64,000 nt of DNA from Orbicella franksi (GCA_964199315.1 OZ116699.1:33046001-33110000), one strand, 5' to 3'; counted from the first letter of the stretch, positions 19,691 to 44,813 are shown. The notes: a model not told the origin generated them from the letters alone. Program-made: numbers and translations.

Positions 19691-19828
19691 AGCAAGTCTC
19701 TTGTAACTTTGAAGCTGGATTTTGTGATTGGAAGCAAGGAGATACAGATTCCTTCGATTGAACTCGAGGCAGTGGCTCAACACCTACCTGATGGACTGGG
19801 CCGAGCGAGGATCACACTACAGGAACAG
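19691..19828 (+). pseudogene. MAM domain N-terminal exon with two premature TGA codons
   Basis: QVSCNFEAGFCDWKQGDTDSFD*TRGSGSTPT*WTGPSEDHTTGT; MAM signature CxFE..CxW...DW.R....TGP..DHT; TGA at 19759-19761 and 19789-19791. Confidence 0.85.
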
Positions 19829-20125
19829 GTATTTCGAAACCTGGCAAATCAAAGCTAAATAGTAATAATAAAAAAAAAACCTTAGCCACGTTTTTCCTTC
19901 CTTTTCTTTTTTCACTCATTCTGTCCATATATTACTTCCTATTTAAAATGGGGTTTTTGCAACTTTCCATCGCCCTATTGGGACAAAAGAGAAAAAAGGA
20001 AGGAAAAAGATAAAAAGCACTCTGAAACAAGATACCCAGGCTTACTTAGCCAATAAACTATTATTGTTATAAAAATAACGTGAAAAAAGGTTTTATGTTT
20101 GTTTATTTGTACTTCAAATTTTCAG

Positions 20126-41134: not shown

Positions 41135-44100
41135 CTTGCCATGCCTTACCAATCCACCCGCTCTGATGTTGGATTATCCAGCCAATGCATTCCTGGAAGA
41201 GACTGGTTATACCTGTGCATTAATACCACAGGACTCCATCATTAGGACTTTCGAATGCACACCGTGCAGCTATGGCACTTACAAGACCGAAGAAGGATGC
41301 ACTCCATGCCCTCCCGGTAAAACATCGACTTATTGCATGTTTAACTTTTTCACTTTCATGTTTCACTCAAGACATGGTTGGGGGGTCTTGAGATGATTGC
41401 ATACACTCTAGTTAATGGTTTACAGATAACACGCGCAGATATTTTACAAGTTCGTCGTATTATTCCCATCAATAAATGTAGCATATTTATCAATTTAGTG
41501 GGGTTCTATCAGGACTCTTTGGCCCAAAAAGAAATCATCTCTTATGGAACAGGTTGCAAAACATGCCCTCCGGGAACTCACGTGGATCCTTCAAGAGCCC
41601 CTGGAAAAGCGGAGTCAGACTGTTTGGCGTGTCCAAAAGGTAAAATGTCATGTTTTCGTGGCTTTTATCACTGGTTGAGAGGACTTTTGGGAAATCAATG
41701 TATTCATGCCTCGGAGTGCTTGGGCTGACAACTTGCAGTTTAAACTATTAAATTCTTCTTGTTTGTTTGTTTCTACGGACAAGTCTGCTGAAAAGGTATT
41801 CCTCTTTCTCTACAAGGACAAATCTGAAAGTCTTTGCGGGATTCAGAGCATGTTTCTGTCTCTTGGGTCATTATCGTCTTGATCGCTATGGTACATGCGT
41901 GGTTTGTCCTCGAGGTTACGACTGTGTAAACGGCACTGTGACTCTAGGCAGTGGATTTTATTGGAGGTGGTCAGATGATCATACCAAACAAATGTACACT
42001 GCATTCAAAGACAATCTACAGATAACTGATGATTCCTTCAACTCGAGTTTAACAAAATGCTCGACTTTGTTGCCTGCTTCGTACGCGTGCCCAGTTGCAA
42101 AATCGTGCTTGGGAAGCCTGGATTCTACTTGTTCCCAGGGCTATGAAGGTCCTCTCTGTGGCGTTCAAGGGTATTTTAAATTGTTCACCAAATGCCAAAG
42201 ATGCCCATCTCTGCCTTGGATTGCTGTTCAATTCGTCATCGTATTTGCCCTTGTTTCCCTTGTGGCATTTCTTACTTTAAGAGAAAGAAAGAAAGAAGAA
42301 CACGCTCAGAGATCAGTGGCAGATATTCTCTTAGCAAGGCTCAAAATAGTTGTCAGCTTCTATCAAGTAACGTCTGGAACATTGAACGCATTCTCATACG
42401 TCAAGTGGCCTGAATCGGTGATAACTGTCGGCAACTACGCGGGGATGTTACAACTTAACCTTTTTTCAAATCGTTCCTATCCACTGCCTTAACAGCTCAA
42501 TGAAAATCTGATCTTATACCACTTTGCTTATGTTGGTCGCCCTCAGCGTTGCCTCGGTAGCAATTCCAGTAGCTTACTATCAGGGAAAAAGGTTTCTTCT
42601 CTATCGAAGTGGTAAGATGTCGGTTCGCAAACAGCGTCGTGCCATAGATCTAACAAAGGAACGTTGCCACCGAACTGCATTCCTACTGCTGTTCATTACA
42701 TACCCAGCAACTTGTGCCCATATCTTCACCGTGCTGCCTCAGGCGTGCCAAGAGATTTGCAGCGAGAACAAAAGCAGTGGATGCGAGGCCTTTTTGAAAG
42801 CGGATCTTTCCGTCAAGTGCCATTATGACGAGTATAATCGGTTTGTCGGATTTTCATACTTTTTTGTAACCAGCCGCATTTCCACTCGTCACTCTCCTTA
42901 TCCTATGGAAATGTCTCTCCAAGTCAAGAAAAGGTAACAGTGAAAAAGAACCAGATCCATTAGCCAGAGGACTTCGATTCTTCTATGAAAACTATTCGGA
43001 CAACTGTTGGTTCTGGGAGATTGTTGAATTGGCCCGCAAGGTATTACTCACCTCAGCGCTTTTACTGACAGACGCACAGAGTCGTACCTACATTGGTTCC
43101 GCGACAATCATCTCTGGCCTTTACACAGTGTTGTTTGCCTGCTACAAACCAATAACGGACTCCTTTGAACATTGGCTTCAACTGATCTCCCTCATGGCAA
43201 GCTCTGTTAATTTCTCGGTGGGCATGTTGCTCAAGGTATGGCCAAACATACGGATTCCAGTTATTTTTATATATGATTATTTTTTTTGCAGAATACTGGG
43301 CGAGAAAATCTCCTTCAGATGTATTAATAATATAACTTTCCCCGGAGAATCATCTGGGCAAGATAATTATTAATCTTTTTGACCAAGCAACTGTCGATGT
43401 CTTACGTGCAAACTTTTCTAAGTCAACTGGGCCTAATTCACAACACAAAAATTGGATCGCTGTGGAATTTATTTGTCACTCGCACGACATATTCCCTAGA
43501 TTCTTTACTTCTGAGCAGACATAGAACCACTCATCGGACGCATGTTGGCCACAAGGTGGCTATTGGTTTAGCCTAATTTGGTTTTATCAATTGGGTTGAT
43601 AATGTGAATTGGCCACCGTAAAGAGATTAGAAAGCCGACGTTTCGAGCGTTAGCCCTTCGTCAGAGCGAATCCGCCTGTTTCGCTCCGACGAAGGGCTAA
43701 CGCTCGAAACGTCAGCTGTTGAATCTCTTTACGGTGGCCAATTTACATTATCAACCCAGTTGACAAAACCAAATTATCGTGTTATGCTCCCCACCGACGC
43801 GGGACCACAGTTTCTTTAGAAACTTACCCCCTCTATTCATTTATTGGTTTAGTCTGCCTACCTTTATACTCCCCTTAGCTGTATTCGTGTCCTAGGCTGG
43901 TGAAATTATTGCCATTTTGTTATTGCGTTTCAGATTCCAAACGAGGTTATCTCCTCAGCAGCTAATAAAGAAGTAGACTATGTAATGCTCAGCGTTCTGC
44001 TCGTGGCAGCCAACACACTAGTTATCGCCGTAACAGCAGGTACAAATATATGAACCAAACATACTGACCAGCGTGTAATTTCTTCTTGAGCTGTCGATAG

Positions 44101-44813
44101 AAAATTGAGCATAAAGGTTATGAGAAAAGCGGAATGGATCGCCGTGCTCAGCAAGAGAAATCATCCTAATGGACACATGTGTATAATCAAATCGGTCCCT
44201 TCAACAGTTGTACAGATTTGAATTGCATGGAGACCTGTGAGAAGATGAGAATAATTTTCAACGAATGTAGATATAGACCGGATTGGGAATGAGTCAGTAC
44301 ATATGGGTTCCCGGGTCATTATGCGACTAAAGGCAACTGAAGTCGAAAATCGTACAGTCATTTACACAAAAATCAGTAACCCCCTTTTAGCGCGGGTTGG
44401 TCTCCCTATCCCCCAGGATTACCTTACATTTTAAAGCCCAGACGCGTTTCTTATGATCATGCACTGTGATTGCTTAAGTTGAATCGTGCACTCCACCTCT
44501 AGTTTTACACCATTACTGTTTTCTCATTCCCGCTTTTCAGTGCAGTACTTTGTGACCCTTGGTCGAAAGTTCTGGACGCTGCGTCGAAATCCTCACTGCA
44601 GTGCAGACTGCTGTCTGTCGCTTGTACACTGCAGGAGGTGGGAGATGTGGCTACGTCTTCTCAACAACCACAACTCCAACAAGAAACCTTCAGCGAGGAT
44701 TTGAATGCTTCGGGATTGGTAACGGCTGCTGCTGAAAGAGAGGAAGTAACGGACAAACCCGCAGCACAGGATGATGACGCTAAAGGTGGTCACGCCAGGC
44801 GGAAAGTGAAATA
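41135..44813 (+). pseudogene. Cys-rich (CxxC/CP.G) repeats and multi-pass membrane region of the receptor
   Basis: CTPCSYGTY...CTPCPPG; GFYQD...CKTCPPGT...CLACPKG; ACFC...CVVCPRG...CSQGYEGPLC; hydrophobic helices with KIVVSFYQV, LLFITYP, FLKADLSVKC, LRFFYENYSDNCWFWEIVELARKVLL. Frameshifts in T6 runs at 42461-42466 and 42860-42865; stops TGA 42509 and TAA 42867. Confidence 0.85.
43575..43775. mobile_element. ~200-bp near-perfect hairpin, Penelope-like inverted pseudo-LTR remnant
   Basis: ~96-bp arms around a 9-nt loop (TCCGCCTGT); core GACGAAGGGCTAACGCTCGAAACGTCAGC; partial related copy near 26930-26980. Confidence 0.7.

Follow-up and report, generated by a model that had tools for sequence, protein, structure and literature searches.

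Is a long same-strand series of MAM, SRCR, leucine-rich repeat (LRR), cysteine-rich (Cys-rich) and multipass membrane modules in a coral genome one giant receptor gene, a row of separate genes, or the remains of a gene that no longer works? The question is raised by a 64,000-nt stretch of Orbicella franksi DNA (GCA_964199315.1, OZ116699.1:33046001-33110000). We call this whole stretch the window; all coordinates are window-based, and the receptor locus lies on the + strand. An earlier note, made from the sequence alone, had read positions 19691 to 44813 as one giant receptor gene with MAM, SRCR, LRR, Cys-rich and seven-transmembrane (7TM)-like modules. A working receptor is not what we find, since the window copy carries multiple disabling lesions. 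The reading that we prefer, with a probability of roughly 85%, is that 19691-44704 (+) is the remnant of one anthozoan receptor-like gene, now a transcribed unitary pseudogene with an ENPP gene nested in it. The ancestral gene would have encoded a type-I-oriented, receptor-like protein. Its predicted layout is a signal peptide, MAM, Sushi, four SRCR, LRRNT, nine LRR, a Cys-rich stalk with DUF7630, and a membrane domain of about nine helices.

The window was compared with the following material. Two metagenome contigs, L002 and L004, match it over 22.6-52.4 kb with an identity of about 98.4-99.4% (L004 about 98.7%); we took them for independent assemblies from the same species or a sister species. 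L005 is a Logan transcript contig (SRR31374343), 98-99% identical to the window. L008/L007 represent the orthologous locus from another coral, with about 74% nucleotide identity, and L006 is the orthologous locus of a further coral and our reference for the intact membrane exon. L010, L003 and L011 come from nearer coral relatives (synonymous divergence, dS, of 0.18-0.35 from the window). Homologues were searched with phmmer, using the motif-bearing piece of the membrane exon, which gave 583 matches, 14 of them below 1e-30. A set of 35 members served for the family alignment and the Pfam scan.

Architecture of the locus

The phases of the exons, from the first MAM exon through the tail, chain into a single reading frame. 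The exons, together with the first intron, are these:

19691-19828 (+), remnant of MAM exon 1, 138 nt, phase 1-1, with two in-frame TGA codons
19829-20125 (+), MAM1-SRCR1 intron, about 300 bp; the L008 equivalent is 4.6 kb and holds MAM exon 2 and the Sushi exon
20126-20428 (+), SRCR1 exon, 303 nt, phase 1-1, Pfam PF00530 at 5.3e-14
21150-21476 (+), SRCR2 exon, 327 nt, phase 1-1, Pfam PF00530
22060-22392 (+), SRCR3 exon, 333 nt, phase 1-1, Pfam PF00530
22873-23196 (+), SRCR4 exon, 324 nt, phase 1-1, Pfam PF00530 at 1.4e-23, with splice-site boundaries
23726-23837 (+), LRRNT exon, 112 nt, ag acceptor and gtaag donor, phase 1 to 2
33906-33977 (+), LRR1 exon, 72 nt, phase 2-2, orthologue at L007:1386-1457
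35222-35293 (+), LRR2 exon, 72 nt, phase 2-2
35400-35471 (+), LRR3 exon, 72 nt, phase 2-2
35749-35823 (+), LRR4 exon, 75 nt, phase 2-2
37964-38035 (+), LRR5 exon, 72 nt, phase 2-2
38508-38579 (+), LRR6 exon, 72 nt, phase 2-2
39093-39170 (+), LRR7 exon, 78 nt, phase 2-2, donor GG at 39171-72
39261-39332 (+), LRR8 exon, 72 nt, phase 2-2
40059-40136 (+), LRR9 (capping) exon, 78 nt, phase 2-2, a tblastx block conserved in L006 and L007
41135-41316 (+), Cys-rich exon 1 (CR1), phase 2 to 1, weak Ephrin_rec_like match
41499-41640 (+), Cys-rich exon 2 (CR2), phase 1 to 2, weak TNFR/ELAPOR-like match
41817-43238 (+), large exon, 1.4 kb, with the final Cys-rich unit, DUF7630 and the greater part of the multipass domain
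43934-44039 (+), penultimate exon with the last transmembrane (TM) helix, phase 0 to 1, conserved in L006
44541-44704 (+), last exon, cytoplasmic tail with a QYF...NP..S..C motif, stop at 44702-04 in the frame set by homologues

The Pfam matches of the four SRCR exons range from E-values of 5e-14 to 1e-23, all above the gathering score, and the LRRNT exon is 62% identical to L007:1041-1142. The LRR exons, which do not show up in an ordinary list of ORFs, were detected by searching for open phase-2 exons of 69-78 nt flanked by ag and gt, together with a relaxed tblastn, and the calls were cross-checked against two other corals. A regular expression for the full LxxLxLxxNxL motif returned zero LRRs and was dropped as a detection method, since the motif is divided between 72-nt phase-2 exons. 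The splice sites agree with the earlier claim that the last SRCR exon ends in phase 1, that the LRRNT exon turns phase 1 into phase 2 and that phase-2 LRR exons come next.

The same order is found in other anthozoans. Two Nematostella RefSeq proteins, P0289 and P0290, read signal peptide-MAM-Sushi-SRCR-LRRNT-LRR-Ephrin_rec_like-DUF7630-TM, and in both the SRCR domain ends directly in the LRRNT cysteines. An older Nematostella model, A7RJF1, has the same layout. In L008/L007 the modules lie on one strand in the window order, namely MAM1, MAM2, Sushi, SRCR1-4, LRRNT, LRR1-9, CR1, CR2 and large exon, and L006 contains LRR2-9, CR1, CR2 and the large exon, followed by the same downstream minus-strand TPH-domain gene. 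Since the Nematostella proteins and the coral orthologues have these modules in the same order, with SRCR abutting LRRNT, we conclude that there was one ancestral gene. The window retains the MAM-SRCR-LRRNT-LRR-Cys-rich-DUF7630-multipass order on one strand with compatible phases; MAM is cut to one exon and Sushi is gone. Thus, the proposal that the open reading frame (ORF) fragments belong to one gene holds, on the phase chain, the Nematostella proteins and the L008/L007 order. It had also been considered that SRCR-MAM and LRR-multipass parts might always be separate genes in homologues, and this is not so. The proposed MAM module is there as the exon at 19691-19828, but only as a single exon with two TGA codons, the remainder being absent along with Sushi. 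Other family members lack the MAM/SRCR head and have CUB or FNIP instead, or begin only with LRRNT or the Cys-rich part. The head is therefore a lineage-specific add-on and not universal.

Lesions and transcription

An uninterrupted ORF is not present. The frame meets TGA codons at 19759, 19789 and 42509, an additional base at 42461, a 5-bp deletion at 42866, a GG donor at 39171 and missing exons. With the nonsense codons, exon loss, donor loss, two frameshifts and loss of structural cysteines, the gene is disabled at several independent points.

The damage begins in the 5' half. MAM exon 1 has 75% amino acid identity to an intact exon at L008:1363-1494; its TGA at 19759-61 stands where L008 has TGG, the Trp of FDW, and its second TGA, at 19789-91, where L008 has TAT, a Tyr. 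A tblastn search with all upstream ORFs of L008 found no counterpart of MAM exon 2 or the Sushi exon anywhere in the window, MAM exon 1 being the sole match. Comparison of the L008 upstream sequence with window positions 9001-19690 gave nothing convincing for a 5' signal-peptide exon. In SRCR1 the Pfam match is restricted to profile positions 16-99, about 11 N-terminal residues are missing or scrambled in the alignment to L008, and a structural Cys has become Tyr (FAC in L008, FSY in the window). SRCR2 has Arg for the Cys of VxCRMLG in the window only, L008 keeping the Cys; one disulfide pair is missing in window and orthologue alike. The final structural Cys of SRCR3 is replaced by Gly (VIC in the orthologue, VIG in the window). 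SRCR4 is the sole SRCR with the full set, six of six cysteines, and is 68% identical to L008 at the amino acid level.

In the 3' half the donor of LRR7 is GG in the window, L004 and L002, and GT in the orthologues L006 and L007. The acceptor of CR1 reads aag in the window and cag in the orthologues. The large exon of L006 is intact, with 480 codons in one frame. Against this reference the window shows a 6-bp deletion at about 42164 that removes a conserved Cys (polymorphic, not in L004), one additional base at about 42461 and a 5-bp deletion at about 42866, and it has a TGA at 42509-11 at a homologous Ser/Ala codon. The exon is colinear with its homologues only by switching among three reading frames. 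Tiny introns were considered as a cause of these frame changes and rejected, because homology is uninterrupted where the frame shifts and the TGA occupies a homologous codon. In the last exon the window is without 4 bases at about 44625 that are present in L004, which shifts the frame of the tail. The L004 version continues to a stop equivalent to window 44812-14, so that the previously assigned gene end at 44813 corresponds to the stop of L004, while the window frame stops at 44702-04.

Do these lesions reflect an assembly error? The additional base, the TGA and the 5-bp deletion of the large exon recur in the independent assembly L004, and the additional base and the TGA, both within the coverage of L005, recur in this transcript contig, which has extra 1-bp and 3-bp deletions. 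With the LRR7 donor, four lesions thus reappear among L004, L002 and L005, and we reject assembly error as their source. The overlap of these three datasets comprises the LRR7 donor and the membrane-exon lesions; the MAM and SRCR1-3 lesions are covered by no second dataset. The introns are kept, the lesion sites are undamaged in L006 and L008, and the membrane-exon and LRR7 lesions are seen across L004, L002 and L005, as is expected of a unitary pseudogene.

L005 has the junctions 41316-41499 and 41640-41817, which join CR1 to CR2 and CR2 to the large exon, and is therefore derived from spliced RNA. Because it is spliced and carries the lesions, the locus is a transcribed pseudogene. The 5' end of L005 (L005:1-250) is repeat-like sequence that corresponds to window 40681-40930 (+). 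Rather than being spliced from the LRR exons, the transcript may begin within a transposable element that lies upstream of CR1, or may run through it.

Compatible exon phases, a real family architecture, transcription with splicing and a low ratio of nonsynonymous to synonymous substitution rates (dN/dS) are what an intact and functional MAM-SRCR-LRR-7TM receptor gene would have. We nevertheless regard such a gene as hardly credible. At least three in-frame stops, two frameshifts, the lost MAM and Sushi exons and a dead donor speak against it; the LRR7 donor, the additional base, the TGA and the 5-bp deletion recur in L004, L002 and L005 wherever these cover them, and the membrane domain is neither 7TM nor like that of a G-protein-coupled receptor (GPCR).

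The lesions might also mark a segregating null allele or a sequencing artefact, with a working allele or close paralogue elsewhere in the species. Indels are indeed polymorphic between individuals (6 bp at 42164, 4 bp at 44625, the 1-bp and 3-bp deletions in L005), omega between window and L004 is below 1, and the evidence comes from three datasets of the species only. We consider this explanation improbable all the same: the additional base and the TGA are in three of three datasets, the 5-bp deletion is in both of those that reach the site (window and L004), and the MAM, Sushi, SRCR and donor lesions amount to a long decay history on this haplotype. Moreover, the best 150 homologue matches and 28 word-index matches contain no closer intact copy of comparable identity.

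The LRRNT-LRR1 intron and its cargo

The LRR exons that follow LRRNT are in phase with it, as had been claimed; what the claim did not include is a 10-kb intron that intervenes, with an ENPP gene and polymerase debris:

23838-33905 (+), LRRNT-LRR1 intron, 10,068 bp against 243 bp in L007
28019-29428 (+), ENPP4/5-like gene, nested and separate from the receptor, intact and intronless, 469 amino acids, PF01663 at 1.8e-72
30624-32767 (+), decayed family-B DNA polymerase (DNA_pol_B_2-like) in several frames, weak PF03175 match at E 0.0087

The locus might instead be divided into two or more genes, with a secreted MAM/SRCR gene ending at about 23.2 kb, an LRR-Cys-rich-multipass gene beginning at LRRNT or later, and ENPP as an ordinary neighbour. 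Many members that are without MAM/SRCR start with a signal peptide and LRRNT (P0187, P0173, P0194), others at the Cys-rich part (P0126 and the 557-residue P0128), an intact ENPP on the same strand stands between LRRNT and LRR1, and L005 shows no splice to upstream exons. Still, the acceptor of the LRRNT exon is canonical and agrees in phase with the donor of SRCR4, and neither the window nor L008 has a Met with a hydrophobic leader before LRRNT, so the start or signal exon that would have spoken for a separate gene is absent there. ENPP splits LRRNT from LRR1, which is sensible only as an intronic insertion; the orthologue has 243 bp at this place, and the Nematostella proteins fuse SRCR to LRRNT. 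We therefore hold two or more separate genes to be very unlikely and retain a single gene with a nested ENPP.

The ENPP4/5-like ORF has hydrophobic N- and C-terminal stretches and 504 homologues; its best named match is from Oculina patagonica (78% identity), followed by ENPP4/5-like proteins of Porites and Montipora. The Oculina orthologue adjoins CENP-P and an inverted ENPP copy, with no SRCR, LRRNT or TM remnants within 10 kb, and ENPP has no match in the orthologous receptor locus of L007. A conserved synteny of ENPP and receptor is ruled out by these two loci. As the Oculina gene lies in another neighbourhood, the ENPP copy has moved into the intron in the lineage of the window. The polymerase fragments are transposon or virus debris, possibly left by a Polinton/Maverick-like element or a virus. 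Neither inverted nor direct terminal repeats were found to bound the 10-kb intron insertion.

Just downstream of the receptor locus a TPH (PF13868) coiled-coil gene lies at about 46560-47600 and about 51600-51800 (-). The gene has a syntenic counterpart in L004 and in L006 and delimits the locus on its 3' side. The window further contains a dispersed repeat of about 230 bp at 56062-56287 (-), 88% identical to L002:15-243, and microsatellites at 24112-24330 and 45400-45460, whose translation gives stretches of Ile, Ser or His.

The membrane domain and its relatives

The translated membrane exon of the window carries the family motifs LKIxxGFYQV, TYPxTC, DYSxxC, FLYENYxxxCWYWExxExxRK and KPIxDxFE, taken from the consensus and the invariant columns of the 35 members. 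The TM motifs quoted in the earlier note are thus conserved motifs of the family that gave the 583 matches. An AlphaFold2 model of the closest intact homologue, P0128, was built from a 35-sequence alignment and is confident (pLDDT 86.8, pTM 0.84). It has eight strongly hydrophobic helices, one amphipathic helix and a Cys-rich beta-hairpin loop. In a Foldseek search of this model against the PDB the best E-value was 0.13, at a TM-score of about 0.15, and all TM-scores were at or below about 0.2; matches to GPCRs reached E 0.4 at best, with TM-scores of 0.09-0.17. A sequence profile search of the PDB gave no match (rhodopsin at E 0.3). None of the 35 members matched a 7tm or GPCR family of Pfam, with a lone Bac_rhodopsin match at E 0.005 in one of them. 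The modelled membrane fold is, judged by these PDB searches, one without a solved counterpart. That the region is not rhodopsin-like had been said before and agrees with these results, as does the proposed Foldseek comparison, which found nothing better than the value given above. The label '7TM-like' does not fit about 8-9 hydrophobic helices, and a GPCR/7TM identity, LGR-type receptors included, was rejected on the helix number, the Pfam and profile results and the poor Foldseek scores. A canonical TRP/PKD fold was rejected as well, no TRP or PKD structure being among the Foldseek matches listed.

Across the 35 members, Pfam finds DUF7630 (PF24633) in 29 and PF06011 in 7 at E of 0.01 or below, with a best value of 7.3e-10, and Ion_trans as one stray match at E 0.001. 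One member, from a sea cucumber, is above the PF06011 gathering threshold of 28.5 bits (P0220, 36.3 bits). PF06011 is the fungal 'TRP' family, with S. cerevisiae Flc1-3, S. pombe Pkd2/Trp1322, A. nidulans TrpR and C. neoformans Flc1, and its proteins are associated with Ca2+ homeostasis and the integrity of the cell wall (PMC8618638, PMC9600462). The likeness consists in a weak, recurrent similarity over the whole membrane domain, seen by profile comparison only, and in the large extracellular N-terminus that precedes a multipass core in both. However, the fungal head is an ML-like/TRP_N lipid-binding domain and not LRR/SRCR; no ML-like/TRP_N Pfam domain was found in the scanned family members, whose ectodomains are LRR, SRCR, MAM or CUB. 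The coral membrane domain may be a distant relative of PF06011 at best. In intact members, ligand binding by an SRCR/LRR ectodomain would probably be coupled to an ion-conducting or transport-like core and not to G proteins.

The nearest described relatives are the Nematostella genes LOC116614027 (P0290, 1709 amino acids) and LOC5520597 (P0289, 1504 amino acids; A7RJF1/EDO48252, P0155), which have the same domain order and are all named 'uncharacterized protein'. They are about 43-46% identical to the window over the large exon and have the TM motifs in common with it. The Nematostella pair has one SRCR domain, the coral gene four. Both Nematostella proteins are predicted and intact, in contrast to the broken window copy, from which most of MAM and the Sushi exon are missing. 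In P0290 the cytoplasmic loop before the FLYENY motif (residues about 1230-1530) contains a 15-residue unit, SLKETQREDRAIDIT, that is repeated in tandem about 20 times; nowhere else do family members vary as much in length as in this loop.

The wider DUF7630 family of Cnidaria and Echinodermata (for example Montipora XP_068730350, Actinia XP_031563513, Rhopilema XP_065051901, Patiria XP_038066729, Apostichopus XP_071837771) shares LRR, Ephrin_rec_like, DUF7630 and the membrane domain. It differs in the N-terminal additions, which are CUB, FNIP or none; MAM plus SRCR is seen only in the Nematostella pair and this coral lineage. The named members that we looked up come from cnidarians and echinoderms, and each of them bears the label 'uncharacterised'. 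Of the suggested Cys-rich multipass family of cnidarians and protists, the cnidarian part is therefore correct and the protist part unconfirmed. LGR-type GPCRs resemble the coral gene in LRRNT, phase-2 72-nt LRR exons, a Cys-rich hinge and a multipass domain, but their rhodopsin-type 7TM is unrelated to the coral membrane domain. In polycystin-1/PKD-REJ proteins a multipass channel-like domain bears adhesive domains, LRR among them. The coral gene is similar to them in that a mosaic adhesive ectodomain including LRR is fused to a multipass domain with a 'TRP/polycystin' label; it differs in that no PKD_channel, REJ or GPS domain was detected and no solved polycystin or TRP fold was matched. 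We found no mention of the name DUF7630 in the literature, nor anything on a MAM/SRCR/LRR fusion architecture in cnidarians. The family is known to RefSeq, UniProt and Pfam but unstudied, and the window locus is a dead member of it.

Age of the decay and losses in other corals

The dN/dS of the window is 0.06-0.21 against L006, L007 and L008, at dS of at least 1, and 0.13-0.18 against L010, L003 and L011, at dS of 0.18-0.35. From such low values we infer that most of the divergence took place under purifying selection of the codons, so that the lesions, and with them the loss of function, would be recent.

The large exon is broken in other corals as well. L010 has an extra TATA at a TA site (about 620; equivalent to window about 42333), and L011 has a large insertion at the same TA site (about 1945). 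This site looks like a DNA-transposon insertion together with an excision footprint. A +4 insertion common to L010 and L011 was set aside, as it is partly an artefact of the cut point of L011. L003 has a 2-bp deficit, and in L007 and L009 a minus-strand ORF of 1263 amino acids without a Pfam match is inserted in the exon (L007:11297-15088). The P0124 contig has adjacent out-of-frame ORFs in a broken large exon. On the same contig, 2.7 kb downstream of the broken exon, lies an ORF of 1243 amino acids of the long interspersed nuclear element (LINE) type, with RVT_1 and endonuclease, at 13356-17087 (-).

These differing lesions allow a bolder proposal, which we put forward as tentative and rather unlikely in its entirety. 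It holds that the gene was lost repeatedly and independently in this coral group (in the window lineage, L010, L011, L003, L007 and P0124), with the L006 exon intact, and that the intact relatives, in L006-type corals, Nematostella, jellyfish and echinoderms, form a new class of surface receptor in animals in which an LRR, SRCR or MAM ectodomain sits on a Flc/Pkd2-like domain of about nine helices, possibly a ligand- or force-gated channel.

Discussion

Several observations sit uneasily with a dead single gene and with the relationships drawn for it. For the joining of its halves, no cDNA linking SRCR4 to LRRNT or LRRNT to LRR1, as had been proposed as a check, was found in this species. The single gene is suggested in the 5' half by orthology and phase logic, and the Nematostella proteins P0289 and P0290 are RefSeq predicted models. 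For its death, the reading frames of all four SRCR exons are still open, most splice sites are unbroken and the locus is transcribed. L005, the sole transcript contig, keeps the intron upstream of CR1, and its transcript may start inside the locus; the retention fits the weakened aag acceptor of CR1, which may be its cause. The dN/dS is low even between lineages that each have lesions, and the window differs from L004 by 11 nonsynonymous and 11 synonymous changes (omega 0.29). Some constraint may remain, or the population may still contain a functional allele. As to the membrane domain, the closest homologue P0128 matches PF06011 at E 0.0012 and 18.1 bits, below the cutoff, and the pieces of the window itself do not match this family in the Pfam scan. 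The coupling of binding to the membrane core is a prediction for a family whose named members are all labelled 'uncharacterized'.

What does the locus mean for annotation and for the biology of the family? It should be annotated as one transcribed pseudogene with a nested ENPP, and neither as a giant receptor nor as several SRCR, LRR or 'DUF7630' genes. An immune or symbiont-sensing role, as had been suggested for the supposed receptor, could at most be guessed from the types of its domains. The combination of a MAM-Sushi-SRCR-LRR ectodomain with a PF06011-like multipass domain is real and has been conserved among anthozoans, and work on expression, localisation and electrophysiology could reasonably be directed at the family rather than at the dead copy of the window. 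The varied breakages in related corals, set against one intact gene, offer a natural comparative handle on function. The finding at the locus itself is modest; the family and the pattern of parallel loss carry more weight. If this pattern is true, it would suggest a recent shift in the selective value of the cue that the receptor sensed.

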